DNA of 64,000 nt from Diadema antillarum. Taxonomy: Eukaryota. Under the pieces are notes generated by a model. The model did no database searches and had not been told where the DNA came from. It worked only from the letters and a program-made list of their open reading frames with translations. Where the stretch lies: NCBI RefSeq assembly GCF_040938485.1, contig NW_027271168.1, forward strand, positions 1,240,001-1,304,000, read 5' to 3'. The translations under genes were made by a program, and so were the position numbers. Shown one piece after another: positions 1,523-55,402 of the stretch; positions within the stretch are counted from its first letter, which is position 1; every line of letters starts with the position of its first letter.

Positions 1523-4500
1523 CTAATCATCACAACAGTCACAGTCACAGTCACAGTCACAGTCCCAGTCCTATAAAACAAAGAAGAGAATAACACATTA
1601 TATACAAATGTATAGATAGAGAGAGAGAGGGGGGGGGGCAAAGAGATATTTATATGTACTTGTCCCATTAAAAAAAAAGAATAAAGAGCGAGAGGAGATT
1701 AATGCGCATCTGTGGACCTTAAAATGGATTAAATTGCCTTGATGCAACTTTTATGAGCAGCCCCTTGATCGATACCATTAACTTCATCACGTATGACTAC
1801 ATTACAGTACACACCTTAATCATAAAGGCCTCACAAACAATTCATATCAGTTTCTACCTATGATGGTATCCACCCATCACATGATTTCTACGTGGAAGAG
1901 ATAAGACAATTTCTACTTAAGGTCCCGTCTACAAAAAAGAAATGGTAAATCCAACATTGTACATGCTGTTACTCCTTTTGTATATGTTAAATTGATATTC
2001 AAAATACTGGATTTACCATTTAATTTTTATTCATTTTTAGACTGGTCCGTCAATCAAACCATGCAAGCTTTTTCTTTAAACATGAAAATGTTTGTTGTCG
2101 CCCTTTGCCTCACTCAAAATACAAATATCAGTCTCTGATATGCATTGTCCAGACAGATTTGGTAAAGAAAATAGATGACGCATCAGAATGAATAGATTAA
2201 AAAATGAGGGAAATTAAACCCATCTGTTTTTGTTTGTTTGTTTGTTTATTTTAATTTTAGAAAATCCACACCCCCAACCCCGGCAGCAATCTGGTTTAAA
2301 CAACGTCAGGTATTGACTAACATATTGTAGACGAAAGGGCACTAGGGAGAGAGAGAGAGGGGGGGGGGGGGAGAGGAGAAGGATAGTGATAGAGAGAGGG
2401 GTAAATATATCAAAATGAATTGAGTTCGTCACGTAAGCCCCAATTTATGTTGACGATATGCTGTCTCATTTATTGAAGCGTTAAATATGCAAATTCCCTC
2501 ATATTTATCGTGTGCACAGGCAAAATCAATGAAAACTGAAGAGTGATTGTGACAAGAGCCAACTGATATAACATATACACAAAATCAAAGATAAGTACAG
2601 GACTTGAAAGTGAAAATGCATATCCGTCAGTGGTTTTGCTTCTCTATATTTTCCGTGTGTTTAAAGGTGTTGTCACTTGCTGTTGTTTCATCTGGCTGTA
2701 AGAATGGAAAGCCACATGTCTCTTGGTGGGTTTTTATACATAATACACAGGCTTTGACGCTCGAGTTAAAATTATATTACGCTGAATATTTGCCTGATGC
2801 AAATATGAATCGCTTATTTCCTCATGTTTCACAAAGTTAATAATCAACCCCAGCTCAAATGGTGTGCGATTTTTTTTCTTTTTTTTTTTAGTCTGTTTAC
2901 GTTGCGCGCCACCATATTTGTATGGTGCCTGCCGTATTATATTGTACTATAAATAACCATGATGCATTTGAGTATCATGACGTCACCCGAGGATTTTTTT
3001 TCCCCGCCACATTTCAATAATAATTTGACAAATAATGAACAGTAATTATACATATCACGTATACTTGAAGTAGAAAGAGAAAAGAAACGATAACCTCGCG
3101 AAAATTAAAAGCTGCATTTCAGTGTGATTAATGAATATTTGCTATCAAAAATATCTCTCATATAAACTACTGAACCATATTTTGAAAAATTTAAGGTACC
3201 CCGACTTTTCACCTTAACCCAGATGATGTTTACGTCCCTTCTAAGTCAACCCAATCCTTTCGATATGGACAGGTTCTTGTTTTAACACTGGTTGAAGGAA
3301 CAGATTCAAGGAAGTTTGTAGAGAAGGATGGAGAATAATATAAGATAGTTTCGCAGCCCGAACTACGAGGAAGTTCAGCATGTTCAGAGGAGAAGGATGT
3401 GAAGGTAGCGACTTTATTCATTATTTATACGAGACATTACAAGAGGGACAAAAGAAGTATATACACAAAGCTCGAACATAAAATTATTCTGCAGTTTTCT
3501 AAGATGTCATTGAGGAAATGATGGGTGGGGAAGAGTCCAGAAGATGTTCGCTTGTGAAAAGTAGTATCAACCACAGACATCATCTGTTGAATCTGAAATT
3601 AATACAGATTCTGTGAAGGCCTCACACGATTTTCCCTGGGTTACGGATTAATAGGAGAGAGCTCGGAAAGAAATATCCATGTCATGATTAACCATTTGCC
3701 TGCGAGATTTGTAGATATCTACAGGATTTGGACAGGCCTTTCAAGGTTTCCAAGGGCAACTAACTGAGCAATGTTGTGTGTAATCATACCGTCCCCTCTG
3801 TAGTCAGTGGACAAACACTCTGTCCCTCGGATGGGACATAAGATGAAGGTCCCGTGTGTGAGAGGATCACAACTAAAAGATCCCGCTTCATTTATTCATG
3901 GTATAGAACAGGATGTTAAACCCAGTGCAGTGGTCCCACCTCACACCCAACTGGACCCATGGAAGACCAGCATAGTTCAGCTGAATGATAATATGGGCTA
4001 TCCAGCCCTCTTCTCAGATGGAAAATGAAACAACGAACAAACAAGGGAGATTATTAGCCATGGCACCTGGAGTACTCGGAAGAAAGAAGCCTTCTTACCC
4101 CACAGCATCCATCGCCGTCGTCATCATCGTCACCACCAAAGCAAAAACTTAGAAGGCAACACACGTTACAATCGTCAGCATTATTGTTGTTACTGCACGG
4201 CCCAATCGAGAAAGATGTGTCAGTAGGCAGCAGGGGAGGGAGAGAGTGGGAAAGAACAAGACATAGATTTTAACTCATGCATTTTTAATCCATGACATTT
4301 TCATATTTGACAGTCCTACCTTCGGCATTTTAACTTCTAACATTTTTTTTTCTCTCTCTCGCATTTGTACCTTAAACATTATGCTACCTCTAGCATTATT
4401 TTTCGTTATGGATATTAACTTACCTCTTTGCAGTTATATCATTGATATCTTATCCCCGACATTCGCATCTAATGCATCCTTATCTGTGATATTTCTAACA

Positions 4501-5924
4501 TTTGACATATTTTATCTCTGCATTTTTATTCCTCTGACACTATTACCTTAATTGCCATTTTTATTTTGGGAATTTGTTCACCTCCGATTCACTTTTCCAT
4601 GACAGTTTTACATTTTAGAGCAATTATGGGGTGTATGATTGGGAGCACGTTTGCGTGTCGTCCTAGTCTTCTTTAAGGAGAAAAGATTCTAGCTTTGTTT
4701 ATATCAGAGACTCGAACTGCTCTTTGTTTCATATATAGTACTATTCAAAGATACTTCTATTCTTTTGTGTGCTATATTTGATATTATATACCTCATAATA
4801 TCCTCTCATCTGATTGGTTAAAAGTGGAGTCATGAAAATAGCTGTGCCCCATTTTCGATCAAAATGACATCATGATTTACTGTGCCCGGGGCATAGAATC
4901 AACTGCGCCCTGTAAATAGGTTTGGATACAGTCGCAACCCCGTACACATAGATCACTCATAAATGTACGCACCAATGATACAACCGCCGCGCTGTCAATC
5001 AGCGTTGATTACGAGTGCTGTAAAAGAGACTAGAATCTATATTTTCGGTATCTATATTTCGGAATCTATATTTTCGGTATATAAAACAAATAATGACAGC
5101 TTGATATTCGGGGCACAGTTAAAATTATGTAGGCCCTTGGTGATGTGAAAACCATAACTATGCCCTCAGCTTCGCTTCGGGCATAGTTATGGTTTTCACA
5201 TCACCTTGGGCCCATAATTTTAACTGTGCCCCTCATAGCAGTCATTATTTGTATACTATTTAAAGGAACTTTTCTTCTCCAGTTTGCACGCTTAAAGTCT
5301 AATGGATTAAAAATTACAATGTACTTTGTACTCATCTTATGTATTTTACGCTACCAATGATATATGTGTGTACACGCATGTGCAATAAAAAAACACGAAC
5401 CAATCAAATCAAATCAAATCAAAATCAAGATGCTATTTCTGAACGTGAACACGAAGTGGAGTTTCTCTCTAAGATTCTGTAAGTGCCACCGCGGTACCTT
5501 GTTCCAGCGTGATAGTGGGAACCTGCTCCATATGCAAAGGCGTCTACGACGTCATCTACCCTCTCCTCCCGTTTCTCCTCCTCCTTTCGCCGTCTCTCTT
5601 CCTCCTTGCGCCGCCACTCCTCCGCACTCTCGACGGTTACATGGTAGGCCGAGTTTCCGGGCGTGGGCTGGGCAGTAATGGCCATCGGGGGCTGACCAGT
5701 AGTCGGTCCTGCTACGGGCACCATGGCGATCTACACACAAAAAAAAACACACCATTTTTTCAAGTGTCAAAACCTTTCTCTTTTGTTTTCTCTCTTCTCT
5801 CTCTGGTGTTTATATCATATCCCATTCATATATGCATTATACTTTGCATAGATGTAAAATATTGTATAGGCCTATATATTAAGTATATCATACATATTAA
5901 ATATATTATATACAGGCCTTTATG

Positions 5925-5961
<37 letters not shown>

Positions 5962-6099
5962 TCTCTAAAAAAATCGAGTGAAAATATTCACTCTTTAAGG
6001 AGTGAATACAAAAGAGAGTGAATTTAGAGTATTCACTCTTTTTTGTATTCACTCCTTCAAGAGTAAATATTTTCACTCGATTTTTTTAAGAGAGTATAC

Positions 6100-6132
<33 letters not shown>

Positions 6133-6343
6133 ATGTATGATTTGATTTCAATTGATATCAAGGCAATACGTATATTATGGTGTGTGTGTTTTCTTTGTGT
6201 GTGTTTTCTTTGTGTGTGTTTGTGTATTGTGTATTCGTATTACGAATATCACCCCTGAAACAAAAATCTGATGGTATAGAACTACATTACGACAACAAGT
6301 ATACCAGTGGGAAATGGAGACAAAAAACAACAACATGAACAAT

Positions 6344-6374
<31 letters not shown>

Positions 6375-6551
6375 GAAAACGAAATTGAGGGATCCTATTT
6401 CTTGCTACAGAAAACACAGGAACACGCGCATTATATAGGGTATCTAGGCAGACAGGGGCACAGTTCCTACCTGCTCCACGCCAATAGCTGGGTTCTCTGG
6501 ATACGGCAGCTGGCCGGTGCTCTGTGAGGGCTGTGAGCCATAAGCGGCCAT
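1523..6551 (-). CDS. Gene A: small Cys/Asp-tail protein of an unrecognised family, 4 exons, 151 aa
   Basis: Exons 6551-6471 (MAAYGSQPSQSTGQLPYPENPAIGVEQ|gtagga), 5730-5498 (IAMVPVAGPTTGQPP...EEWRRKEEERRRKEEEKREE...HYHAGT-AG|gtaccg), 4192-4099 (NNNNADDCNVCCLLSFCFGGDDDDDGDGCCG|gtaaga), 1570-1523 (DWDCDCDCDCDCCDD*). Total 456 nt, phases 0/2/0, same as the two paralogues. Confidence 0.8.
3764..4045 (+). mobile_element. 5'-truncated copy of the same SINE (intron 3 of gene A; partial counterpart at 12597-12738)
   Basis: ctgagcaatgttgtgtgtaatcataccgtcccctct...cccaactggaccc.tggaagaccagc...cagatggaaaatga matches the 43.5 kb copy. Confidence 0.8.
5085..5255. mobile_element. Foldback MITE-like hairpin
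   Basis: caaataatgac...cacagttaaaattatg...gtgatgtgaaaaccataactatgccc / cttcgcttc / gggcatagttatggttttcacatcac...cataattttaactgtg...gtcattatttg. Confidence 0.7.
5959..6097. mobile_element. Short palindromic MITE (TACTCTCT...AGAGAGTA family)
   Basis: Self-complementary cactc/gagtg-rich element, an internally deleted relative of 19723-20016, inserted in a (TA)n tract. Confidence 0.75.
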
Positions 6552-7815
6552 CGCAAACCGTGGCGGTGGTGGCGGTGGTGGCGTGTGCTGTGCTGTGCTG
6601 TACTCAGACGAAAGATGAACACAAGACGGCGGCGGAATTCAAGCCAGGGTCACGTCTCGGTCCCAAAATGGTGATGTATTCAAGTGGTTCGATCTCCCTG
6701 CAAATACTAATTTGGCGAACTGCTCTCGAGATACGTTCGGTCCATGTTCTATCTCATACGAGCCATGCGAATTTCTTCCTTCTACCTCATAATAACGATA
6801 TTCCATTGCCTAAACCGACATACGTCTTGCTAATGAGCGCGGCCGTGTCTCGCAAGACCGCATGATATCGAAGGGCAAGTGCAAGTACAGTGTACATTTA
6901 TTTTGTTTGAACAAAACCCGTCGAAACCCTTTCGGCTGTGATTCAGATGACTGGACTGTGAAGATATCTGTTAGGCCTGCAACCCTTCCCTTTTGTTTGT
7001 TGAGATCAAACAGAATGTGGCGGGGGTGCAGATCACAGTAGGCCTATAGTCTGCTGTTTTGTGCCTCGGAATATTATGATTATTACTAATCAATGAAACT
7101 TAAAACCACAACACATTCGTCAGTATGCCACATTTTCTACTGTAAAATCCTTCTTGAAAAGACGTATTCATCAGTAGTTGGAAAGTGAACATTTCTCTTC
7201 AAATAATATATCGATTTATATAGGTGTTGTATGTTTAATACGTTTATCTTCACTAGTTACCTTGAATGTAATTTGTTGATTTGCTTTGATATCATATGTG
7301 TGTAAAATAGATGTTTTTTTTTCATCACCAGCACTTAGGAAGCATTAGTTTGTTATGACGCGCTATAGAAGCTATTATCTTTATTGTCATCTATTATCAT
7401 TTGTTATCATAATCGCTGTTACTACTGTTATTTTTATCATTTAATCATCATCATTAAGTATTTTTATCATTACTATGTCTATAAGAGATGATTGAGTGTA
7501 ATGTAACGATACGAAAAAAAAAATTGGTGTCCTCTGTGAAAATGGCACGAAGAATCTTTTGTATTCAGTCACGATTTTGATTGACTTTGTCTTCAAACTT
7601 TAAAGTGAAGCTCAGTTTATATCTTTATAGAATGCCTCCATACAGATTAACCGATCTCAAGCTGCATGATAATGATCTTAAGACAAACTTTTCCTTCTAG
7701 GGTAAATACCTCACACATCCCTCTCCAGGGAAAAAAGAAAAAAAAAAGAAAACAAGAAACACATCCTGTCTTTGGAAACGTTAAGATTACGCCACGTGCA
7801 TTCCCATACCTTTTG

Positions 7816-8171
7816 TTAAAGGGGATGGCTAGTAACTGATCAGTGGGAATCAGTGGGAATGCTGAGGGATGATTGTTCCAATCCTTGTGGGATTCATTTA
7901 AGAGTACATTATATATCTATTCTTGTGTGAAAATTATTTGCGTCAGAATGGTCTCATATTCAAGTAATGTGCAGTTTAATGCTTCCCAGGTAAGCGTCCC
8001 TGGTCAGTGACGGGGCATTAATCTGCACATTACTTGAATATGTGACCGTTCTGAAGCAAATGATTTTCACACAGCAGTAGATATATAATGTACTCTTAAA
8101 TGAATCCCACAAGGATTGGAACAATCATCCCTCAGCATTCCCACTGATCGGTTACTAGCCATCCCCTTTAA
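7816..8171. mobile_element. TTAA-flanked MITE (Kolobok-like termini), copy 1
   Basis: TTAA|AGGGGATGGCTAGTAAC...GTTACTAGCCATCCCCT|TTAA. It is absent at the equivalent position of duplication copy 2. A second copy is at 55403-55767. Confidence 0.8.
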
Positions 8172-9722
8172 TGAAAGTACAATGTAGTAATGTATAGTGA
8201 TTGACAGATGATGTTGCATCAAAAGTATGGATAGAATTTTCGTTTAGGATTTTTTTTTGAGGGGGGGGTAGGCCGATTCAAGTAATCTACAGAAAATTAT
8301 CATACATGGGACATGCTATTGATAATCGGGGTATCATAAATCAACCAGAGTAAAACATGTATTTGTATTGTAGCATGGAGGTACAATACACCTACTTTGA
8401 CCTCCATGGTATACTAGTAAGCCATAAACGTAAAGACTATCAGCACAAGAGGGCGTCTTTCACAGAGATACCGCTTATACAATCACTGTGATACTATATA
8501 CATCGTGATGCGTAGAATGTGGTCTAGATGAAAAAAATATATATAAAATCGTGAGCCGTATGACTCGTGGGTGTCGGGCTCGTTCAAACTACGGCTGCAG
8601 ACCATGGTTCCAAATTGACGTGTAGTGATTGTTTACGCGCGAAAGACATTTCGAAGTTAAAAAGCACGAGTATAACATTGCTTATCAAAGCCCTGCAATG
8701 CTCAGTAATAATGACTACATACACTGGATTTATATCATATCATGTGTATAAAAAGCTGTCATATTTTATTGAGAATTTTACACTTTGTTTGCGAAGCAAC
8801 CGGTACGGTTACTTTGTTATAACATAGTTATACCAGATGAATATTACACTCTTCAGAATCAATTAATGTATAATAATTTTAGCTACTGTGATATTGCGTA
8901 CAAATGCAAAACATTCCTATTAAAAGTACGAAAAAATTTCGATTGGCTTAAAATACCAAGCTCCTTGAAAAGAACTAACTACCGTATGTCACGCTAATGC
9001 AGGAAAGTCCTGGCAAACTGCGATGTTATCTTTTGGTTTTTACAATTACATTAGAATCTCATTAACGCTCATTCAATTTCATATATTAACTAAATTACAA
9101 TAAATAGTGGTACTGTTCCATGATGTATTAACATATCAAGTACTTGTAGCCAGCTGATTTCAGTTAGAATGATGAAGTACAAAACAGACATATATAATAT
9201 AACAAGCTCAATCACAATCCTCGAACTTAGAATTGGGCTTTCAACTTTTTGCGAGATACCAAGAAAACACTTATGATATAGTACAGAGCATACCATTTTT
9301 AGAGGAATTCAAAGTTTATTTGATGAAAATCGGGTTTGGAATGACTGAAACATCCAAAAACAAAGTAAAACAAAGCGATTGTAATAAAGTGTGGGTCCCA
9401 CACTTTATTAGAATCGCTCTTTTTTGGATAGCACAGTCATTTCAAAACCAATTTTCATCTGCAATAAACATTGAATTCCTCATAGAATTACATGCTCTTT
9501 CATATTTCAGAAGAGGTTTCGCATTATCTCACCAAATAATGTTAGAAACGTGACATTAGGTCTCAACCAAAACTCAGTTACTTATTGCAGTCTTTACGCA
9601 CATCAGAATGAATTATATTAAATCGCATTAGTTGATGAAAAACAGATAAAACAGATATTGCCTCATTTGCATAACTTAATACAATATCAAGATGGGTATC
9701 GGCAGTAAAGCTATGCTTTCTC

Positions 9723-9753
<31 letters not shown>

Positions 9754-10002
9754 CCTCTATCATATACAAAATTAGTGATAAAATGTTGATATACAATAAG
9801 TATCTTTGGCTTTTGCCATCTTTGGTACGCTTTACAGTTGTGAGACGATAACAAAGAATGCCGCAGAGGCGAAGATTTTTCTGCTTTATCTTCAGCTTTA
9901 TCTGTCTGTGTGTCGCAAAGACACACAGACACACACAGATGTATAAACATTATGTATAACTGCATACATATATATCTATACAGTTGTAGTTATGTGGAAT
10001 TG

Positions 10003-10054
<52 letters not shown>

Positions 10055-10195
10055 CATATATATAGTGAAAACTTTGAGCAAAGAAAATGGGTTTTCATCG
10101 GGATGAAAACCCATTTTCTTTTCTCAAAGTTTTCACTATTTATTATTTGTTTCTGGTCAGTTTTCCTTCTCTTTGTTTCAAAATATATAATCATA

Positions 10196-10241
<46 letters not shown>

Positions 10242-10859
10242 CAACATGTTATATCTAGCATGATATATTTAAGATATAGCCTCTTCAGAATTCTCACTGT
10301 TCAGCAAGAGGGACATGAATACGTAAAAAATCTCACTCTTGTCGAAGAACGTCAGGCTCTGCACCTATAGTGTGTTCGATGATATCCCCATCAATATACT
10401 GTTCTTGTCAGTATTACTCATTTGTTCGGTTGCCATCTAAAACTGATACCTAACTGACAATCTGGATCATTCAAAGCCTCACTCAAAACTCACATTTTCA
10501 CCATGGCATTCAACTGCTAACTCCCTGGGAGGAGTCTGCGCCTTTGAATGTTTTTACAGCAGATATACGGCACTATACAAATGCTGTGGATCATCATCAT
10601 TATCTACAGTCTCATTGGTTGATCAATAGTGGTTCACAGACTGGCGCGCTTTCCGACCTAATCCAACATCCGTGAGCACGTGCCATGGAGTATTTGGGCA
10701 GAATCAGTGTGGATGGGATGAAACTTTGAGATAGCCCAAGTTGTGTCCGTGTGTCCACCTCTGTAGCATGTTTTTCTTTTTCTGACTGCTGGTTGCCGGT
10801 GGAACGTCCTGCATGTCGTAAGATAGAAAGTTCTGTTTTCAACACGCTCCCATTGACTG

Positions 10860-23938: not shown

Positions 23939-26900
23939 AAAATTAGACAATGCCAAAATGTCAAAATACAAATAAGGCGGAACTTCATTTGAATGTACAA
24001 CTATAAATCTCAATAAACAAAAAAATATGTTTGAAGTAGTGTTGGTCTGTATGTTCAAAGTACGAGAAATATAGAGCCTCAGTACCTATTAATAGAACAT
24101 TGGTCTCTTTACACGCTGAACATGTTTATGACATAATGACATGTCACTTGACATGTACTCCATTGTTCCATTCTTTTTTTCTTTTTACATGTTAGAGCAG
24201 CCTTTTCATGGGCGTCACGGGGGGGGGGGGTGCGTTGGATGCGAACGCACCCCCCTTCAGTTCATGTTATTCAGTGTAAATATTAAAAAAGAAAGTTTAT
24301 TTCGATGATAGTATTTTATAGGTAAATTGTTCAATGATAATCTACATCAAAATATACTGCTACCTTAAACAAGTGGGACTGTTTCAAGTCGATAAAACAC
24401 GCAAACATATGCATCAACTTGCACCATTTACAACATCAAAATGCAAAAAGTTTTCACCGTGGGAGGGGGACACACCCTCCCCCTCGCTAACTCTGCTCGC
24501 TCTTGCTTGGTCGCGTGATATTCAGTGTAGGCCCCTAAATATCAAAACAGGAAGTTTGTTTGATGATACTATTTTATAGGCAAACTGTTCAATGATAATC
24601 TACATCAAAATATACTGCTACCTTAATCAAGTGGGACTGTTTCAAGTCGATAAAACAAGCAAAAACATGCATCAAATTGCACCATCTACAACATCAGAAT
24701 GCAAAAAAAAAAAAAAAAAAAAAAAATCTCAGTGGGAGGAAACCCCATCCCAGACTCTCCACCCTCGCTAACTCCGCTCACTCTTGCTTGGTCGCGTTCA
24801 CGATATTCAGTGTAAATATTGAAACAGGAAGTTTATTTTAATGATACTATGTTATAGGCAAATTGTTCAATAATAATTTACGTCAAAATGCACTGCTACC
24901 TTAAACAAGTGGGACTGTTTCAAGCCGATAAAACATGCAATAACATACATCAATTTGCACCATTTACAACATCAAAATGCAAAAAGTTCTCACCGTGGAA
25001 GGGGGATGACCCCGTTCCCACACCCTCCCCCTTCGCTCGCTCCGCTTGCTCGGGCTCGCTCGCGTTTATGACATCAGTGTAAGAACCAATACAAGAAGTT
25101 TACCGGTATTTAAATGATATCATTTATAGGCACATTGTTCAATAACAATTTACATCAAAATGTACTGCTACCTTAAACAAGTGGGACTGTTTCAAGTCGA
25201 TAAAACAACCAAAAACATGCATCAACTTGCACCATCTACCACATCAAAATGCAAAAAGTTTTCACCGTGGGAGGGGGACACTCCCTCCCACACCCTCCCC
25301 TTACTCACTCTGCATTCTCTTTCTTGGTCGCGTTCATAATATTCAATGTAAATATTAAAACAGAACGTTTATTTCGATGATATTATTTTATAAGTAAAAT
25401 GTTTAATGATCTACATCAAAATATACTGAGTATCTTTACCAAATGGGACTGTTTCAAGTCGATAAAACACGCAAAAACCTGCATCAACTTGCACCATTTA
25501 CAACATCAAAATGCAAAAAGTTTCCACCGTGGGAGGGGGACACCCCCTCCCACACCCTCCCCCTCGCTAACTCTGCTCGCTCTTGCTTGGTCGCGTGATA
25601 TTCAGTGTAGGCCCCTAAATATCAAAACAGGAGTTTGTTTGATGATACTATCTTATAGGCAAACTGTTCAATGATAATCTACATCAAAATATACTGCTAC
25701 CTTAAACAAGTGGGACTGTTTCAAGTCGATAAAACACGCAAACACATGCATCAACTTGCACCATTTCCAACATCAAAATGCAAAAAGTTTTCACCGTGGG
25801 AGGGGGACACCCCCTCCCACGCTCTCCCCCTCGCTAAGTCTGCTCGCTCTTGCTTGGTTGCGTGATATTCAGTGTAGGCCCCTAAATATTAAAACAGGAA
25901 GTTTATTTGATGATACTATTTTATAGGCAAACTGTTCAATGATCTACATCAAAATATACTGCTACTTTAAACAAGTGGGACTGTTTCAAGTCGACAAAAC
26001 AACCAAAAACATGCATCAACTTGCACCATCTACCACATCAAAATGCAAAAAGTTTTCACCGTGGGAGGGGGACACTCCCTCCCACACCCTCCCCTTACTC
26101 ACTCTGCATTCTCTTGCTTGGTCGCGTTCATGATATTCAATGTAAATATTAAAACAGAAAGTTTATTTGGATGATACTATTTTACAAGTAAATTGTTCAA
26201 TAATAATGTACATCAAAATATGAAGAGCTCATTTGCAAATGGGGTTAGATCCATTTTTGATGAAAATTGAGTTATTAGCATCACTGCACAGAATTCCACT
26301 TGAGTTAGTTATAGTGAAATTTTCAAATCCAGACAAACATTTGAATATAAATTATAGCAAAATTAGATTTTGATTTTCCATACACTTGTGTACAAATTCT
26401 CACAAACAAACCAGTTTTTCTCTAAAGTTTTATACTAAAAGTGGATCTAGCCCCTTTTGCAAATAAACTCCTCATATACTGAGTACCTTTAACAAGTGGG
26501 ACCTCTTCAAGTCGATAAAACACGCAAAAACATGCATCAACTTCACTCTTAAAACATCCGAGTCAGAACTGATCTGGAACTGGGTCCGTTGGGGTCACAC
26601 ACCGTTCCGGGTCAAAAATGACTTGGAATTTGGTCATGACACACCCTCCCACACCCTCCCCTTCACTAACTCTGCTTGCTCTTGCTTGGTCGCGTGATAT
26701 TCAGTGTAGGCCCCTAAATATTAAAACAGGAAGTTTATTTGATGATATTATTTTATAGGCAAACTGTTCCATGATATTCTACATCAAAATATACTGCTAC
26801 CATAGATGATAAAACAAGCAAAAACATGCATCAAATTGCACCATCTACAACATCAGAATGCAAAAAATTCTCACCACACCCTCCCCCTCCCTACCCCCAA

Positions 26901-29900
26901 GATGAAATCCTAGCTACGCTGTACCCTTTCCCCGCTTGGTTTCCCTTAAAAATCACTAAAAGTCTGGGGATTGAGAGCTTCCTAAATTCCAAATGTCTGT
27001 CCAAAAAATTCGTTACAGTTAGTGTCAAAACGCACCCCCCCCCCCTTGAAAAAAAAGCTGGTGACGCCCCTTCTTTGATTTAAGTTTAATAGTTAAAGAT
27101 GAAACTCTATTAGACTTGACAGTCATATCATATCAAACGTGAGATGAATACACAGACATATATATGAGTTTTCATCTATAGTAATCAGATTCGATCCAAT
27201 ATGAACAGACACAACCAACCTGTTGCTGATTCTGTTTGCTTCAGAATATTTTGCTTACGGCAAAAAATGTGTGGAACAAGGAGACATAGATGAAAGCAAA
27301 TATTATTCAAAAGGGTGTAGAGGAAGACAAATTGATAAAGAAACTCACCTCTTAACAAGAATATATCAGTTAATATGATAATAATTTATATACATATGCT
27401 TTACAATGCATTTATTTTCCCTCATATGGCTTATTGTAATATTGTTTGGGGTAATTGTAATAAGACGCAGGTAAATTTATTGTTTGTTGTTTTTTTTTTT
27501 GCAAAAGAAGACGATCAGAATATGTTCACACTCTACGTACTTAGCGCATACAACCCCGTTATTCAAGCAGCTAAATGTGTTAAAAATTGATGATATACAT
27601 AAGTTTCAAACTTCTGTATTTATGTATAAGTACACGCAAAATTTGTTATCACAGTCCTTTCAAAACTTTTTTTGACTAAAATGCCATCATTCATTCGTAC
27701 CCTACAAGACACTCAACAGATTTTCATCTGCATTATCCAAAATCTCTTATAGCTCACAGGTCAGTGAGGCATCACCGACCTGATACATGGAATGCTTTAC
27801 CTGACTCCCTAAAGACACGAACATCTTTGTTTTCTATTAAAGCTATAGCTTAAAGAAATTTATTTTAACTCAATATATTTAGTAAATTAAAGGATAATAA
27901 CACAAACATTCAACTCACTTATTGCACCCGCACAGCACTCACTCCATCTTCTTTTTCCCTCTAAAGCATACTATTGTAATATAGAACAGAAAAAAATCTG
28001 TACTTTCTGTGAGAGGCAATCCTGAGTTGTTTTTCCCAATGAGGCCATCAGCCCAGTCAAGCTATGCTTATGCTGACGGTCCCCTGCTTCCTTATTTAAT
28101 CAAATGTACTGCCTTATTTGTATCATATGAAACTATCAATGTTTTACAAAGATTTTTGTTATGCATGTATAGTATCAACTGCACTTTTGTTTTGTATTGC
28201 TCCTTTGTCATTTTGGTCATGTTTGGTTTGAATTTGTCACATTGATGTTATTCATTTTTTATTTAATTTAATTTGAGAAGCAAAATAAAATACGAACGAA
28301 CAAACGAACGAATATTTGTGAGCAACTTGTTGAAATGGGACAATGGATATAGAAGTATGTTGATATAATTATACAAGTATTATATTTTTTTATTAGTTGA
28401 AATTATTAGCTACTGAAGAAAACTAAAACATGAGTGATGATTAATTCTAACAATATCTTAGAAAATATTCTTAAATAATGAGTGCACTATCATGAAAAGT
28501 TTTGGCTTCATTTTTTTTTTTGGGGGGGGGGTTCTGCTGTTTGGTGATGACCTTACTTTTTAAGACATTGAATATTTCCTTGATCTGTTTTTTTACTTGA
28601 AGCACTTAATAATAGTATATACTATAATGATAGATCCAAAGAGAGATAACAAACCTGACAAATAAATGACGATCGTATATGTACTCAAAATAATGGCTGA
28701 GTGTGAAGATATAAGTTGTGTCGCATAACGGTAACACGAGCATTATTTGAGGTCTTATAGATATGATGTGATTTGTCAAAGATTACGTACAGGTCATTAT
28801 CTGATATCGACATCTTTTGTTCAACCATTGTGCAATGAAACTGACGAATCTTAGCTGTCCTTGACGGTAGAAACATAATGAGATGTATGCGTATAGAATT
28901 CGCAGTGATAATGATTATCATAATAACAACTCAGATTAATAAAAACATGTTGTCTAAAAAAATGAACGCCGGTCAATTTACAAATTGTTCAGTTCAGTAT
29001 ATCATCTAGAAAATGAAATGATGAAAGCTTCATTAAGTGAGAAATAAAATTGTTGCGTAATCTTAACTTTTCTCATATCTGAAAAAAAAATAAATCGTGA
29101 TTTTCTTCACAACCGGATGCATTTACGCAGATAAGTATATGATTGGATGATGGTGTCAAAACCTTATACACTTCCCGGACTGATCTGCACGCAGATTTTT
29201 TCACTACATTTCCATGCTTTGCAAAGACTTTAAAGACATTAAAACGGTGTAATAGTTTTGGTTGAGACCTAACTTCAGGCTTGACCTTTATTGGTGAGAT
29301 AATGAGAAACCTCTCATAAAATGTAAAAGAGGATGTAGTTCCAAGTGGAATTCAACGTTTATTTGATGAAAATTGGTTTTGATGTGGCTGAGATATCCAA
29401 AACAGGGCAATCCTCAAACAAAAGGCAGGACCCACCTTTTATTATGATCGCTTGTTTTACTTTGTTTTGTTTTTTAATGTCTCAGTCATTCCAAAATCAA
29501 TTTTCATCAAATAAACTTTGAATTCCTCTTAGAATGGTATGCTTTGTAGCCAAGTCCTCATCTCCACCAATAATACCATGGTTTTAAAGCTGGCATCAGC
29601 AGACCAGGAGCTCATTAATTTGTTTTCCCATTCCTTCGTTAAGGTATCTCTTTCATATCCATTGTATATCCCCTTTATCTTTGCTTAAATCGGCAGCTGA
29701 AAGTACCTAATCAGTTTCGGGAAGGATTTTAATCACTGTTTCGGCGACAAGCACCAATAGGGTCAATCTCAAAATGTGCATGGGGTCCTTTGTCTTATCA
29801 TCCGCCGAATTTACGCCGAAATCTTTTTGTCTCGGCTTGAAATTAAGATGCGATTCGGGACCTTGCTCAAAGTTGGTCTGAATGAAATAATAGATTAAAA

Positions 29901-32900
29901 ACAAGACGAACAGCTTGGATGGTAGAGGTTTTATCACATTCAAATAGAATTGCTTTACTTGGGCCTCTTCCTCTTCTCTCTTTTGAATCGGAGTGCCAAT
30001 CCGTTTACTCAGATATGTATATTTAGTTATGCATTTTTCCCATTATTTAAAGATTTCCACTACAAATAAAAAGTATCATTTTCAATTTGTCCCTTTTTAC
30101 TCAGGAACTTACCAGTTGTGAAAGCATTGGTCTTCTTTTAGTCTGTGAATTCCGTCCATATTCCTTAAAGTCTTGTGCTATTATTTCACAAAATTCCACG
30201 CCTGTCAAAATATTTGTATGTTATGTGTATATTATACATACATGTATATGTACAGGTGTATGTTCGTAAATTTGTTCATATTATGATTATGTGGTTGTTT
30301 AGTATTTATTTTATGTAAGTAATTTATTCTTACTTTATTGCATTTTCCCGATATGCCATTTCACCTGCTTGTTCAAATTATGATTGTTTCTTTGTAATGT
30401 CATTTTGCATGATTTGGATATGGAAAACTATATGTGAAAATAAAAGATGAATTTAAGATGAGATATTTCTTGAGTTTCCCTGATTTCAGAAATCAGTGAT
30501 AGCAGTTCCAACCACATATTCAAATTGACAGCGGTGATGATGTCATCACCCAACAAAGTCTTCAACATATAATACATAAAGCAATGTGATTAAAAAGTAG
30601 GCCTTTCTCCTGCGCATCAAATTGTTGGTAATTAGGAAACAATGATACCTGTTGTGTTTTTCGGGTGTGAAGGAAGAGGTTGAAACTGCTATTACATCGA
30701 GCAAATAAATGCTTTAATCAGTAACCATTGCGTATTAGTGATGTGTGATTACACTACAAAGCAATGTTGGCGTGGTTAGATAAGCACCACTTCTAAAAGC
30801 AGTGATCTCCGATTAAGAAAAAAAAAAGTCAAACAAATTTAGACAAATCCTCTCCAATGCAGATATCTGGTTAATGACAGCTTTTCATATTTTTGTTAAG
30901 TTATAATTTCGCAGACAGTAAAAAGAACATTCATAATTGGCTCAGAGATCGCACTATTTACAAATTATTTGCAATGATAAATCATTTGTGAATGATGTTC
31001 GTTGTACATATTTAACTTCCCCTTAATATGGTCCATGGGCTGTGCTAACATAATAGATTGGTGATGAGGCGGACAAAACTACATACATGCCGTGCTAACT
31101 TTTTTTTTTACAATGCCCGGCCGTGGTACAAGAACGCGTATACATACGCCTGTGGATGTTAAATGTTGACATTATTGGTTCATTATTGCAGTCCTATACC
31201 AATCACTAATCTGTGTCCAATGAATACTCTGGGGAAATTTGCAGTAGAAATAATATTCGTCGTGTTATTATCAGAATAGCACCTCTGAGTTTAATTGCTG
31301 GCCCTGCTCTATAAGCCATCAAAGAAATTTACAGAAATAAATGTTCCTTTGAGAGAGAGAGAAACAGAAAGTTTAATCTATTGGAATAAAGTGCCTGTTT
31401 AAAAATCCTCTACAAACTTGTAAATATTCAGAGGTGACCATAACAATCAACTATCTTTTATCTGAACAACATAAATATGCTCTCATGAAAGCTATTTTTA
31501 TGCCTCCGTCACGAAGTGGTGCCGGAGGCATTATGTTTTCGGGTTGTCCGTCCGTCCGTCCTTCCGTCCGTCCGTCCTTCCGTCCGTCTGTAATGAATTT
31601 TGTGGACAGGATAACTATCAAAACCTTTTGAGGTATCCTAATGAAACTTGGCATATAATATGTGTATTAGGGGGTGAAGTTGTGCTTATCAACTTTTGGG
31701 TGCACATGCTCAAGGTCAAAGGCCAAAAGGTCAAGGTCAAATACATAAAATTTCACTATTTCCACCATATCTATGCAATGCTGAAGATATTTTCTTGAAA
31801 CTTAATGTATACATGTATTACCCAATTAAGATTCTCTGGTGAAAGTTTGGGTCATGAGGTCAAAGGTCAAAGGTCAAAAGGTCAAGTAAAAATATTAAAA
31901 CTTCACCTTTTTTTTCTGTACCTTGGAAATTGTTCAAGGTATCTTCATGGAACATAGTATATATACATGTACTGACTGGCAGTGATTATCTAGAGAATTT
32001 AGGGTTCATGGGGTCAAAGGTTAGGGGTCAAAGGTCAAGGGCAACACTTCAAAATTTTACTATTTCCGTCATGTTTATGCAATGCCAGCAGGAATTTTTT
32101 TTTTTTACACTTGGTGTATGCATGTATAACCTAATAGAGATTCTCTGGAAAGTTTTTTTTTTCTTTTGTTTTTGCCTCAAAGGCCAAAAGGTCAAAGATC
32201 AAGTGAAAGTGCTGAACTAGGTTTTTCCTCCATATCTCGGAAGTGGCTCAAGTTATCTTCAAACGTACTACATATTTATGCATGTCCTGCCTGACAGTGA
32301 TTATCTTGTGAATTTTAGGGTCAAAGGCCAGATGAAAATGGTAACAATTTACTATTCAATACAGAAATTGCACTTTTTCTCAATACCTTGAAAATTACTC
32401 AATGCATAAACATATGAATGGGTCAAAGTCAAGTTAAAGTCCTTAAATCCCAAATACATGCTCTCCTATTCATCCAATTAAACCTAGGTCAAGGAAGGTG
32501 AACATTCAACACATTTGTGACAAACTTGTCATTTTGATATTTTGCCAATTTTGTGAAAATGTAATCACACATTGTCCACATGTACTATGGATAGACCTAT
32601 TGGGAGAATCATGCATTATGGCGGAGGCATACCAGTCGCCATAGCGACATTTCTAGTTCTATTATTAACATTATAAAACACTAACAATGATTAGTAAAAT
32701 TGATTATGAAAATATACTCTCAACTGTACCCCCGTCCCAACCCCCAACCCCACCGTCCCCATCTCTCTCCCTTCCTCGTTCAGGTATCTGTCGACCCGAT
32801 GCCACCGGCGGAATACCCAGAGAGTTCGCCCCTAACGACAGCGGTGACGGCTCAGCCCATGCCAACCGCGCCCATGGAAACGAACGGTACTGGCGTCGAA

Positions 32901-35900
32901 TCGGAAGAGGAGAAACAGCGAAGACGGGGTTACTATGACAACGCTCCCGTGTACACGCAACCTGTTGCTCATCCTAGGTATAATATGAACACGAGTATAC
33001 AAAAACTGTCGCATAAGTACTGGCCACATATAGCCAGTATGATGGCCTAGCGCTGCTGTTCACATTTATGTACTGCAGGAAAAATACCGAATAAAGTCGT
33101 GAAAGTTTGGATCCTGCGACACATGCGCTACGTTAAATTTCATTTACCTTTATGCGTTGACAAAAAAAAAAAGGTGGTTGGAAATACTCATGGAAGTGCA
33201 ATTGATTAATCAAAGTTTGGAACTGAGATAATCATCGCAATGTTGACGATGTAATTTGTAATGATTACTATCATCAACATTACTATCGTTGTTCTTATTC
33301 ATTATTAAGGTTTTTGCTTTCATTGCCATCATCATCATCATAATTGATGATCTTATGTGGTGATGAACGTTAGGATTTCAGACAATTAACAATTTAGTAT
33401 CAAAATTTCTTCACTCTTGTAGAAACGGAGTTCAACGACTGTCATCCAGCAGGCAGTGTGAATGCGATGTCTTTTATATCCATTCGATTTGATCGTCATA
33501 GTCACAATGATTGGTATTATGATTTCATTATCAAGGAATCAATTACTAGTGGCTCTATGTATTGTGGAGTACTGTATTTACTGTAATCTATATCACATGA
33601 CGAGCAACTTATACCATGGGCAGCGGCGTAAATCCGTACTGAGGAGTGGGGGGGGGGGGGGGGGATGGTCACCATCACCACGATTACAAGCCCATAACCG
33701 GACCGGCGCAGCCTTGGGGGGTGGGGGGAGAAGCTTGGTGCCCCCCCCCCCCCCACACGCACACTTTACAGGGATCGGATGTCCCACTCTTTTGCATGAA
33801 ATATAAAGTGGGAGGAAAGTGGCAGCAAAAATATGAAGACTTTTTGTTCTTGTTGTTGCTTTTTTTTTTGCTTGTCAGATGACTTGCGGCGGAAAATCAG
33901 ACCTTAAAAGTATGAAGACATTTTTTGTTTTTGAAATATCTGTGAGAGAGAGCGGAGCGACCGGGTTAACGGGGGGAGGGTGTGTATGGGGGGGGGGGGG
34001 GTGTCCCTCTCCCACACGAGGAAGATTTTGCATTTTCAGACCTGAAATTCAGCGATCTGGTGCACATTTTTGGTGAAATTTTTGTTTGTTTTTTCTTTAA
34101 AAAAACAATAGAAAATGAAATATTCACAATATATTATTGAATGACTAAATCGTGGTATTTCAGCTCTTGCTCCGCCTGTGCGACATCACTGCGAAAGCCT
34201 ACTAAATAGTGGGGCCTATCACTGGCGTAGACAGGATTGGGGGAGCGGTTATGAGATCGTGAGGGAGTGAAGCAAGCGAGGGGGGGGGGGGAGGGTATGG
34301 TATGGGGGTTTCTTCCTCCCACGTTGAAATCTTTTTACATTGAAAATTTTGACATTTTACAGTCCAAAAACTGCCGTTTGTAGCTTTCTTCGCTTTGGAA
34401 ATTAAGGGGGGCGCACACCGTGCGCAACTGCTGTCAATCACTGGCAGCAACATCAGGAGAATGGCATAGCGATTAAATGCGAGCGAGCGGAGCGAGCGAG
34501 CTTGAAAATTTTGTCATAATGCTTTTACATGCTAAAAACTGCCGTTTGTAGCTATACTTCTTCGCTTTGGAAATCAAGGGGGGCCGCACCGGGCGCAACT
34601 GTTGTCAATCACTGGCAGCAACATCAGGAGAATGGTATAGCGATTAAATGCGAGCGAGCGAAGCGAGTGAGCTTGAAAATTTTGACATTTTACAGTCCAA
34701 AAACTGCCGTTTGTGGCTGTATTTTTTTGCTTTGGAAATTAAGGGGGGCGCACCGGGTGCAACTGTTGGCAATTACTGGCAGCAACATCAGGAGAATGGC
34801 ATAACAATTAAATGCGAGCGAGTGAAGCGAGCGAGCTTGAAAATTTTGACATTTTACAGTCCCCAACTGCCGCTTTTGGCTGAATTTTTTTGCTTTGGAA
34901 ATTAAGGGGGGCGCACGGGCGCAACTACTGGCAGTTACTGGCAGCAACATCAGGGGAATGGCATAACGATTGAATACGAGCGAGCGAAGCGAGTGAGCTT
35001 GAAAATTTTGACTTTTTACAGTCCCAAAACTGTCGTTTGTAGCTATATTTTTCGCTTTGAAAATTAAGGGGGTGGGGGCGCACCGGGCACAACTGCTGGC
35101 AATTACTGGCAGCATGCAACATCAGGAGAATGGCATAACGATTAAATGAAAGCGAGCGAGTTTGAAATTTTGACATTTTACAGTCCCCAAACTGTCGTTT
35201 GTGGCTGTATTTTTTCGCTTTGGAAATCAAGGGGGGGGGGGGGGCGACACACCGGGCGCAACTGTCGGCAATTACTAGCAGTAACATCAGGAGAATGGCA
35301 TAACGATTAAATGCGAGCGAGCGAAGCGAGTGAGCTTGAAAATTTTGATATTTTACAGTCCCAAAAAACTGTCTTTTGTGGCTGTATTTTTTTCGCTTTG
35401 GAAATTAAGGGGGGGCGCACCGGGCGAAAATTGCTGGCAGTTACTGGTAGCAACATCAGGAGAATGGCATAATGATTAAATGCGAGCGAGCGAAGCGAGC
35501 GAGCTTCAAATTTTTGACATTTTACAGTCCCAAAACTGCCGTTTGTAGCTATATTTTTCGCTTTGGAAATTAAGGGGCCGGGGCGCACCGGCGCAACTGC
35601 AGCCATTCACTGGCTGCAGCATCAGGAGAATGGCATAGCGATTAAATGCGAGCGAGCGGAGCGAGCGAGCTTTAAAATTTTGACATTTTACACTCCTAAC
35701 ACTGCCGATTGTAGCTATATTTTTCGCTTTTGTTTGTCCCACTTTTATGGGGGAACCATCCCCCCCCCCCCCATTGACGCCTCTGCATATGAGGGTGCTT
35801 TTGTTAAGTGAAAGATCTGCTGCACACTCTTTGATAAATTAGGGAAATATACGTCAATCTCAAAAGTGTACAAAGTCTATCGAAAGGGATCCTGTTATAC

Positions 35901-37235
35901 AGCGGAGCTTTTGCATGTTTATGATTGCAATACAACGATCTGGTGCATCTGGCGATATTTGGACAATTTTCCATTAAGAAAGTTCGAGATTTGTCCTCAT
36001 CTCGGGAATTGCTTTGGGGATAAATGATTTGTCTGCCTTAACACTTCCGTAGGGGCGGGGCAAATGCCCCTTTGCCCCCCCCCCCCCCCCCCCCCCCGAG
36101 ATAGATTCGACGCCCCTGATCTTCCTTGGGTATGCTCATAGATGTATCCTGACTGAGTCACCAGTCACTGTCGTTTCTCAGGAATGATTCAGGAAATTGC
36201 GGGGGTTCAATTATGGCGATATAGTTTTTGTTATTGTTTGTTTGTTTGTTCGTTTGTTTGTTTGTTTTCGTACATATCTTGCAGATGGTCCCCAGTTACT
36301 CGCGTCATAGCATGTTTACATATAGGCCTATACTATTTGACGTTGTCAACGTCTGAGCCATACCTTACAGTGTATGTCGATGTTACTTTCTTCGTGAGCG
36401 AGCGAAGCAAGCGAGCGCTTGAGAAAATTATGACATTTTCCTACAAGATAGAATACTGTTCAGCTCTGTTACCTGTCTGAAGGCCGGCGTACAAACGTCA
36501 TGCAATATGCCAAAATTGATACAATCACATTTCTGCTTCCTCCATTTTTTTCTCAAAATTCAGGGGTTGATGATTGTACAGGCCATCCCCCCCCCCTCCT
36601 CCATTTCAGGGGGGATATATCCCCCCCCCCCCATCCCCCCCCCCCCGGGATTTACGCCCATGCCACCATGGGTAATCAACCATGGCTCGCAATGAATCAA
36701 TCAGATGTCTGCGCAACGTACCCATTAATTTTGATTTTGTCACACGTACTCTCCTACTTGGTTTCATAGCACCACAGTGCGCTCAGATGATTGTTGCGCG
36801 TCATGCTACTGCACAGGAAACGAGTGCGATGGCGACTGTCTCTCATGCTTACTATGCTGCTGGATTTGGCGTGGAAACTCACACCACCACGGCGGTCACG
36901 TCAACCACGATCACGGCGGGTGCTGCGATGGTGACGGTGATGGCGGTTGCGACTGCGATTGCAAGTGTTGCTCGGTGAGTTTCATCCGTTGGTTGCCCAA
37001 CACGAATTTACACGTATGCTGGCATTACACTGTCTCGAAATTTAAGACGCCCTCACGAATAACCTGATGTTGTTACGATCAGACACGAATTGGAACATTT
37101 TCCTAACGTGTGTCCATCTTTGCTCAACTTCAAGACAGTGTGACGCCTGCTTTCAAGCACGATCCTGGTTCAAGTTCCTGATCATGGCTGCTAATCGTTG
37201 TCGTGCCCATAGGCACACACGCACAAACACCCTCT

Positions 37236-37272
<37 letters not shown>

Positions 37273-37593
37273 TCCACTTTTCTTCTTTGACTATATATCG
37301 ATCATTATTCTTTAGATTTCTGTTCTAATTCATTATCAGTTAGCCGATCTATACAAAATCGCAAATCTACTATTTGTGTACTTTTATATCCGATGAACTA
37401 TACTATGATATCATATCTATAGACCAATCTATCAATTATCTATCTTTCAGTCGATATTTATGTTTCTATCCCATCAACTTCTGTTATCCAGGATGGATGC
37501 GACCATGATTGTGACTGTGATTGTGGTGGATGTGATTGTGATGGATGCGACTGCGACCTTGGAGACTGCGACCTTGGAGGCTGCGATTTTTGA
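21896..37593 (+). CDS. Gene C: divergent paralogue with PPPPY motif and extended Cys/His/Asp-rich C-terminus, 4 exons, 190 aa
   Basis: Exons 21896-21967 (METTQTPTGMDDPPPPPYSVAVEQ|gtaaga), 32784-32977 (VSVDPMPPAEYPESSPLTTAVTAQP...VAHP-AG|gtataa), 36770-36974 (TTVRSDDCCASCYCTGNECDGDCLSCLLCCWIWRGNSHHHGGHVNHDHGGCCDGDGDGGCDCDCKCCS|gtgagt), 37492-37593 (DGCDHDCDCDCGGCDCDGCDCDLGDCDLGGCDF*). Total 573 nt. The exon 1-2 join across 10.8 kb is inferred from the homologous VEQ junction in A and B. Confidence 0.78.
24290..26870. repeat. ~265-bp tandem array (7 full units plus degenerate units)
   Basis: The marker aacaagtgggactgtttcaag recurs at ~24367, 24625, 24903, 25175, 25438, 25704, 25969 and ~26490. 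Confidence 0.92.
26219..26476. mobile_element. MITE nested within a satellite unit
   Basis: TA|TGAAGAGCTCATTTGCAAATGGGGTTAGATCCA...TGGATCTAGCCCCTTTTGCAAATAAACTCCTCA|TA splits the unit motif catcaaaata-tactgag. Confidence 0.7.
27400..27880 (+). mobile_element. 3' fragment of a CR1/L2-group non-LTR retrotransposon (post-RT region, frameshifted)
   Basis: LYNAFIFPHMAYCNIVWG ... LQKK.IRIC ... HTTPLFKQLNVLKIDDIHKFQTSVFMYK is a typical C-terminal ORF2 motif series. Confidence 0.8.
31495..32658 (+). mobile_element. Helentron-associated (DINE-1/HINE-like) non-autonomous element
   Basis: 5' TTTTTATGCCTCCG subterminal IR, (GTCC)n microsatellite, repeated aaggtcaaaggtca cores, then 3' CGGAGGCAT, a hairpin GTCGCCATAGCGAC and CTAGTT. 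Confidence 0.8.
34340..35730. repeat. ~167-bp tandem array, 8 units
   Basis: catcagg.gaatggc recurs at 34451, 34622, 34786, 34948, 35120, 35285, 35454 and 35620; the units carry gcgagcgagcgaagcgagc. Confidence 0.92.
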
Positions 37594-46812: not shown

Positions 46813-54996
<8,184 letters not shown>

Positions 54997-55402
54997 CAGC
55001 CTCTCCTGCTCTTGAAATAAGTACCTGACAACAAGAGACACATAAGACATGATGCTTCTGAAAGGAATCAGTATTAATAGTACGATACCAATTACTGCAC
55101 AAGCTGAAATTTTTGTGGTGGTTTTATTTTCGCAAATTTCGCGAATCGCCTTTGAAAAGCGAAAATAACAACACACGAAAATAACAACGCGTGAATAACT
55201 ACGTTCACTTAGACCCTCACAACCGCGAAATGAACAACACGCCAAAATGTCCTCCAAGTAGCAATTCGCGAAAATATCTGTACGTGAAATTTTCAGCTCG
55301 TACAGTAATGTGAATTGTACTACACACTATAAAAATCAAACAGAGCATAAAATCCTGTTTGCAGACTATCCAAAGTCATGATTCAGCAAAACAGTAAACT
55401 GC

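Follow-up and report, generated by a model that had tools for sequence, protein, structure and literature searches.

We describe a small family of acidic, cysteine-rich proteins encoded by three genes, here called A, B and C, within a 64,000-nucleotide stretch of DNA (the window) from the sea urchin Diadema antillarum (assembly GCA_040938485.1, contig JBFRCO010000280.1). Their sequences mark them as real genes of expressed type from a small unnamed family, and gene C is under purifying selection that extends into its C-terminal tail of Asp and Cys residues. The explanation that we favor, and to which we assign a probability of roughly 0.4 by analogy with known systems, is that the family consists of disordered cytosolic proteins in which an acidic Cys/Asp/His domain would bind metal and a short Cys patch would be S-acylated.

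Gene structure, paralogy and protein layout

Gene models were obtained by searching the window for motifs in all six frames and then reading each exon together with its flanks for splice boundaries. This yields three paralogous genes of four exons each; A and B are read from the minus strand, C from the plus strand. The introns are canonical (GT-AG) throughout, and their positions and phases (0/2/0) are identical among the three genes. The exon number and phases proposed in an initial annotation of this DNA are therefore upheld, both by the canonical boundaries and by the NCBI models of the same assembly, the products of which (151, 130 and 190 amino acids for A, B and C, respectively) have the same lengths as our own. 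The NCBI products of B (P0001) and C (P0002) are identical letter for letter to the models built here; that of A was compared by length and place only, A being analyzed from the spliced sequence in our scripts. A tblastn search with every exon found no further paralogues in the window.

Gene C begins with an exon of 24 codons (21896..21967, plus strand) that carries a canonical PPxY motif (PPPPPY) and ends in VEQ. Exon 2 (32784..32977) is Pro-rich, contains a VTAQP motif and a short charged helix, and ends in phase 2. Exon 3 (36770..36974) opens with DDCC and continues with the patch CLSCLLCCWIW, a His/Gly-rich insert and a Cys/Asp/Gly stretch, while exon 4 (37492..37593) supplies a 33-codon Cys/Asp/Gly tail ending in Phe. 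Gene A, read on the minus strand, has a first exon of 27 codons from ATG to VEQ (6471..6551; donor GTAGGA, phase 0), a Pro-rich second exon that carries AITAQP and a segment rich in E, R and K whose composition is helix-like (5498..5730, ending in phase 2), and a third exon consisting of an Asn run, DDC, the patch VCCLLSFCFGG, poly-Asp and CCG (4099..4192; donor GTAAGA, phase 0). Its last exon (1523..1570) is an Asp-Cys tail of 15 codons followed by the stop codon. Gene B, also on the minus strand, has a first exon of 28 codons ending in VEQ (17150..17233), a second exon with 70% protein identity to that of A, the first 24 residues being identical (13997..14223), and a third exon in which the patch CDVCCLFSFCC is followed by four Asp (12803..12893). 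This third exon holds an in-frame TGA (12812..12814), and the counterpart of exon 4 (10860..10883), which reads DCDCGDD and then a stop, lies downstream of it in what would be 3' untranslated sequence.

Most of the features predicted as common to the three genes are indeed found in each: VEQ at the end of exon 1, [IV]TAQP in exon 2, a (D/E)DC...CC patch in exon 3 (CCLL in A, CCLF in B and CLLCC in C), and an N-terminus lacking a hydrophobic signal, as expected of proteins said to have no signal peptide. The final Asp-Cys exons need a correction. The six-frame search does read Asp-Cys strings at 1523-1570 (A), 10860-10883 (B) and 37492-37593 (C), but that of B is untranslated because of the TGA and, on the sequences, Asp-Cys tails terminate only the products of A and C.

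Comparison of the DNA identifies A and B as tandem duplicates. They are 86% identical over exon 1 and about 350 bp upstream, 93% identical over the first part of exon 2, and 74-83% identical in their introns. The conserved 5' flank (6552..6897, minus strand, in A; 17234-17573 in B) is probably a shared promoter and 5' untranslated region. B and C are related at the protein level, with a BLASTP match (E=3e-6) that is collinear over 121 residues and an alignment score that exceeds those of shuffled sequences (z=4.8, 0/1000).

The products of 130-190 residues contain 10-17 Pro and have net charges in the range -12 to -29 (A -22, C -29). The best 19-residue Kyte-Doolittle window reaches 0.7-0.9, which is below transmembrane hydrophobicity in A, B and C; the 11-residue Cys patch reaches 2.1. 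It is followed by 32 residues in A and 68 in C. In the last 97 residues of C, Cys accounts for 27%, Asp for 23%, Gly for 19% and His for 7%, and there are eight CxC and four CC motifs; the Cys content of the A counterpart is 26%. In an AlphaFold2 model of C (mean predicted local distance difference test score, pLDDT, 41; predicted template modeling score 0.13), short helices appear only at 65-74 and 113-125, and the head has pLDDT values below 50. The modeling suggests that the products are intrinsically disordered on their own.

Selection, truncation and a probable distant relative

The 90% cluster of gene C contains an orthologue from Diadema setosum (P0003, 189 residues) that is 95% identical, and all eight splice boundaries of C are kept in that species. 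Exon 1 is 100% conserved, as is the protein encoded by exon 4, and the number of His residues in the His-rich insert is the same in the two species despite substitutions. We counted substitutions by the Nei-Gojobori method between the C genes of the two species and, within the window, between A and B. For C, the ratio of nonsynonymous to synonymous rates (dN/dS) is 0.17, with 9.5 nonsynonymous changes over 438 sites and 14.5 synonymous changes over 120 sites; non-coding DNA is 88-91% identical between the species. In the tail exon there are zero nonsynonymous and three synonymous changes (Fisher exact about 0.004, computed by hand). Gene C is thus under purifying selection, tail included, and the comparison indicates conservation of the family across Diadema as a minimum. 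Because the tail of C mixes the codons of both residues (GAT 6 and GAC 6, TGT 5 and TGC 5), it is not a DNA microsatellite or simple repeat, and its Asp-Cys pattern appears to be held at the protein level.

Between A and B, dN/dS is 0.42 overall, 0.28 over the first 82 residues and 0.45 in the C-terminal half. The A tail is encoded by an almost perfect hexanucleotide repeat, (GACTGT)5, and the remnant in B is (GACTGT)2, a pattern suggesting that slippage probably alters the length of the tail in the A/B branch.

The TGA of B lies three codons ahead of the exon 3 donor, and its counterpart in the alignment with A is GGA (Gly). As a result, P0001 ends at residue 130, with the Cys patch and the four Asp forming its C-terminus, and the DCDCGDD exon is left untranslated. 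In D. setosum, the gene that lies divergently upstream of C has an exon 1 of the B/A type and a called product of 129 residues. This exon 1 and the length of the called product suggest that the short, B-type form predates the split between D. antillarum and D. setosum. Two other accounts of the B reading frame were considered and rejected. Selenocysteine insertion at the TGA is unlikely, as the aligned residue in A is Gly rather than Cys and there is no selenocysteine insertion element or other Rfam family at threshold in the window. Nor did exon 3 fall into one of the assembly gaps, since it is present at 12803-12893, outside the gaps.

The initial annotation held that this architecture could not be assigned to a named family, and our searches of Pfam, PDB and sequence databases agree, none of them returning a known family. 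At E<=10, hmmscan against Pfam-A gave no match for the exon pieces or for P0001, P0002, P0003 and P0005 (a limpet protein introduced below). The families without a match include MDFI and PLAC8 as well as CYSTM (PF12734) and all metallothioneins, the two groups to which the proteins had been compared at the outset; HMMER filters may hide very weak matches. There was no meaningful relative among PDB sequences. When C exon 3 was searched with phmmer against 1.84 billion representative sequences, only gene C itself was recovered, and word-indexed searches with B exon 2 and with the whole of C returned only B and C themselves. Scores in the ESM Atlas are all below 0.9 and provide only weak leads, to CYSTM and MDFI. 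A literature search found nothing relevant on DCDCDC, on the limpet locus LOTGIDRAFT_157625 or on Diadema cysteine-rich transcripts. The databases searched miss the 151-residue product of A and the 129-residue product of D. setosum, both of which are present in the contig tables, and the A product was not returned even when A exon sequences were part of the query profile. The absence of relatives from other sea urchins is, for this reason, weak evidence.

A search with a family profile added one marginal match (E=0.14), the hypothetical protein LOTGIDRAFT_157625 of the limpet Lottia gigantea (P0005, 157 residues). The order of its features is that of the Diadema proteins, with PPxY near the N-terminus, IITTQP, and DD.CC..C.C at the start of the Cys domain. 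Gene C and the limpet protein have the words CCDGDGD and CDCDCGG in common, letter for letter, and the C-terminus of the latter reads C-D-(A)-F, with a terminal Phe as in C. An hhalign comparison gives a probability of 94.6%, and the C-terminal domains align better than any of 2000 doublet-preserving shuffles (z=4.6, 0/2000). However, composition-adjusted BLASTP gives no match, the similarity between the N-terminal halves is not significant, and the limpet gene differs in having two coding exons, with a single phase-0 intron that is near, not at, a Diadema intron position. The Atlas model of P0005 has a pLDDT of 0.44. Weighing these sequence comparisons, we consider homology of P0005 with the family probable, the alternative being convergence of low-complexity sequence.

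Taken together, these comparisons bear on a skeptical explanation, namely that A, B and C are fast-evolving, largely functionless young genes, with tails that are translated microsatellites and with B as a decaying pseudogene. The (GACTGT)5 tail of A and the (GACTGT)2 remnant of B are what this would predict, as are the stop in B, premature relative to A, the dN/dS of 0.45 in the C-terminal halves of these two genes, and the lack of relatives in other sea urchins in databases that, as noted, miss some called products. Yet C is under clear purifying selection, its tail included, and splice sites are conserved between species. The 129-residue product called in D. setosum suggests that a B-type stop is old and tolerated rather than a sign of decay, and there is a probable mollusc relative with the same layout. 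We consider it very unlikely that the family is largely functionless.

Candidate functions of the cysteine-rich domain

In the favored explanation, the products would be made in the cytosol, since they have neither a signal peptide nor a transmembrane helix. From the N-terminus, their proposed layout is a Pro-rich head (whose PPxY is canonical in C, as it is in the Lottia protein; A and B instead have LPYP in exon 1, which fits neither PPxY nor LPxY), the motif [IV]T[AT]QP, a short charged helix and the 11-residue Cys patch, after which A and C would carry an acidic Cys/Asp(/Gly/His) domain ending in Asp-Cys repeats. This C-terminal domain would be the selected, working part of the protein. 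Most likely it would take up its fold on binding metal ions that are soft or borderline (Zn, Cu, Cd), with thiolate and carboxylate ligands and, in C, also imidazole. The patch would most likely be S-acylated and hold the protein at a membrane, much as in yeast proteins of the CYSTM/CYSPD set, and B, stopped just after the patch, would be an anchor-only version that has no chelating tail.

The CYSTM module is always found at the extreme C-terminus, and consists of a helix of transmembrane length with five to six Cys, including a run of three to four, and then an acidic residue, preceded by a Pro/Gln-rich head (PMC2804304). The set that we compared (PF12734) comprises human CYSTM1, yeast Cpp1-3 and the plant proteins CDT1 and PCC1, and members of CYSTM/CYSPD have been tied to metal and stress tolerance (PMC2804304, PMC10840359). 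Like these proteins, the Diadema products are small and signal-less, with a disordered Pro-rich head that at times contains PPxY, a variable linker, a hydrophobic Cys patch and acidic residues. Of the defining CYSTM features, only the disordered Pro-rich head, the small size and the trailing acidic residues are found here; the layout as a whole is that of the truncated B product, in which nothing but four Asp follows the patch. Unlike CYSTM proteins, they give no match to the PF12734 profile, their patch is 11 residues long with Cys in pairs only and has neither a run of three to four Cys nor a helix of transmembrane length, and in A and C it is not C-terminal, 32-68 acidic Cys-rich residues coming after it. 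The earlier suggestion of CYSTM-like membrane-tethered proteins consequently does not stand as a family assignment: the profile gives no match, the maximum 19-residue Kyte-Doolittle value is 0.9 and the patch is internal in A and C, so that an analogy is all that is left of it. The yeast CYSTM domains are themselves palmitoylated anchors, not transmembrane helices, and the PPxY of one member binds Rsp5 (PMC10840359). It is therefore plausible, by analogy, that the patch works like a CYSTM domain, especially in the truncated B.

With metallothioneins the family shares low molecular weight, a Cys content of about 26-33% in CxC and CC motifs, the lack of a fold without metal, and a cytosolic location. 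The proteins differ from them in giving no match to a metallothionein Pfam family, in placing Asp rather than Lys/Ser beside Cys, in containing His, Trp, Tyr and Phe, in having a long N-terminal half without Cys, and in the absence of a cluster of metal-response-element cores upstream. These likenesses could nevertheless be taken to mean that the proteins are soluble metallothionein-like buffers, in which the Cys/Asp/His region and the patch together wrap metal in the cytosol and nothing is acylated. A Cys fraction of 26-27% that includes CxC and CC motifs, the His count of C that is kept between species and the lack of a transmembrane segment would all suit a buffer of this kind. It is harder to reconcile with the missing Pfam match and the few upstream metal-response-element cores, and with the patch: a segment rich in Leu, Phe, Trp and Ile is conserved in the three paralogues and in D. 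setosum, hydrophobic and aromatic residues being unusual in metallothioneins, and B retains it without a tail, which suggests a function for the patch itself. A purely soluble buffer seems quite unlikely to us.

Cores of the metal-response element (TGCRCNC) were counted over 1 kb of upstream sequence for each gene. A window-wide excess of this core stems from a 162-bp tandem repeat in gene C intron 2, and there is no enrichment upstream of the genes, with one core for A and none for B or C. The counts do not favor a classical MTF-1-driven promoter or metal induction.

The closest chemical parallel to the tails is offered by phytochelatins and synthetic phytochelatins, (Glu-Cys)nGly, in which an acidic residue likewise alternates strictly with Cys. 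Phytochelatins are made by an enzyme and are gamma-Glu-linked, unlike the repeats described here, which are Asp-Cys codons in spliced exons and form part of a larger protein; the resemblance is one of chemistry only. However, ribosomally made, alpha-linked (Glu-Cys)n peptides with n of 8-20 bind Cd, according to the part of a later account that cites Bae et al. 2000 (PMC4292183). By analogy, this makes Asp-Cys repeats chemically credible chelators, and the C-terminal domain may be the natural ribosomal counterpart of such alpha-linked synthetic phytochelatins.

The main rival to metal chelation is partner binding of the I-mfa kind. The I-mfa domain is cytoplasmic, C-terminal and Cys-rich, and binds and masks the basic nuclear localization signal (NLS) of HIV Rev and of several transcription regulators, causing cytoplasmic retention (PMC3062594). 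If the acidic Cys-rich C-terminus of the Diadema proteins were a module of this type, it would bind basic NLS or arginine-rich motifs and retain their carriers in the cytoplasm, and any Zn would be purely structural. The proteins resemble MDFI/MDFIC (PF15316) in being cytoplasmic and in having a long C-terminal Cys-rich domain after a non-conserved, disordered region, and a net charge of -22 to -29 suits basic partners. MDFI clusters also occur among the Atlas feature matches, weakly (0.51 for C exon 3 and 0.58 for the Lottia protein), although scores below 0.9 are no more than leads. The vertebrate I-mfa domain is acidic too, and it begins with an acidic residue and then DCC..C and contains DCDL-type motifs, which we take as a lead only; it has more hydrophobic residues and is without regular Asp-Cys repeats. 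We know of no VEQ or TAQP motif in vertebrate MDFI or MDFIC. At E<=10, PF15316 has no match in C, in P0002:85-190, in B, in the D. setosum orthologue or in the Lottia protein. We regard an I-mfa-like function as unlikely.

Several observations weigh against a metal-binding domain coupled to an S-acylated patch. The explanation is built from sequence, and the Pfam scan described above lends it no family. Metallothioneins normally pair Cys with Lys or Ser. Having Asp beside every Cys makes the domain very negative, which is atypical of thiolate clusters and would equally fit binding to basic partners. Cys residues flanked by Asp are also unfavorable for S-acylation, and the hydrophobic patch is a short one. 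Gene B persists without a tail; the A tail, as a near-perfect hexanucleotide repeat, could be young and unconstrained, the cross-species comparison having covered C. Finally, TGCRCNC cores are not enriched upstream of the genes.

If the tails do bind metal, they would be a new player in metal and redox homeostasis of marine invertebrates. To our knowledge, no natural gene-encoded proteins with chelating repeats of alternating acidic residues and Cys have been described before, and these would then be the first, with (Glu-Cys)n as their artificial counterpart, here carried on a CYSTM-like anchor. The three genes would also form a natural series for structure-function work, with a long tail in C, a short repeat tail in A and none in B. 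In its broadest form, the argument would have an old bilaterian family, represented in echinoderms and molluscs, of ribosomal Asp-Cys chelators tethered by S-acylation, with tails that evolve by slippage and with B as the anchor-only form. We think this rather improbable as a whole; were it true, it would add a third natural poly-thiol/carboxylate route of metal handling beside metallothioneins and phytochelatin synthase. Should the domain instead turn out I-mfa-like, a family described only from vertebrates in the literature searched would extend to invertebrates. Even if no function is assigned, the genes are a clean case of how composition can hide a conserved family from profile libraries.

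Second copy of gene C and surrounding sequence

The 90% cluster of gene C holds, in addition to the D. setosum orthologue, a second D. antillarum copy of C (P0004, 192 residues) on contig JBFRCO010000675.1. The DNA of this copy is 93-99% identical to positions 20000-39000 of the window, and an A/B-type exon 1 (3935-4015 of that locus) is found 6 kb upstream of the P0004 gene. The position of the body of B is occupied there by a called gene of 498 residues with YqaJ and viral alkaline exonuclease domains. We think that this contig probably represents an uncollapsed haplotig, in which the other haplotype carries an inserted mobile element; the alternative is a duplication of very recent date.

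The window is AT-rich (GC about 38%) and contains four runs of N. Assembly gaps are located in gene B intron 3 (12468-12596) and, as a pair, in gene B intron 1 (16161-16307 and 16724-16928, within 16161-16928). They touch no exon, and no reading frame runs across one. Collinearity between A and B holds to either side of the first gap, A 3317-3580 corresponding to B 12135-12379 and A 3906-4529 to B 12603-13219, and it resumes right after the third gap, with the N runs leaving continuity across them without proof.

Simple-sequence repeats at 504-561, 916-951, 5921-5960, 6095-6138 and 9999-10241 are common to the A and B regions. They give many short BLAST matches in both orientations and do not seem to affect the genes. 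B and C are divergent, and the 4.7-kb spacer that separates them contains an ATG-initiated open reading frame (ORF) of 157 residues (18312-18785, minus strand), for which Pfam has no match. Two tandem arrays lie within gene C, one of 267 bp x 7.3 in intron 1 (24277-26221) and the other of 162 bp x 8.4 in intron 2 (34340-35730), and most units of the latter contain a TGCGCCC core, resembling a metal-response element, on the minus strand. Downstream of C is an HHIP-like gene (46813-55257, minus strand), in which an ORF at 53938-55257 matches Folate_rec and GSDH. An HHIP-like gene also follows C on contig JBFRCO010000675.1, where the called product has 749 residues with Folate_rec, GSDH and NTR domains.

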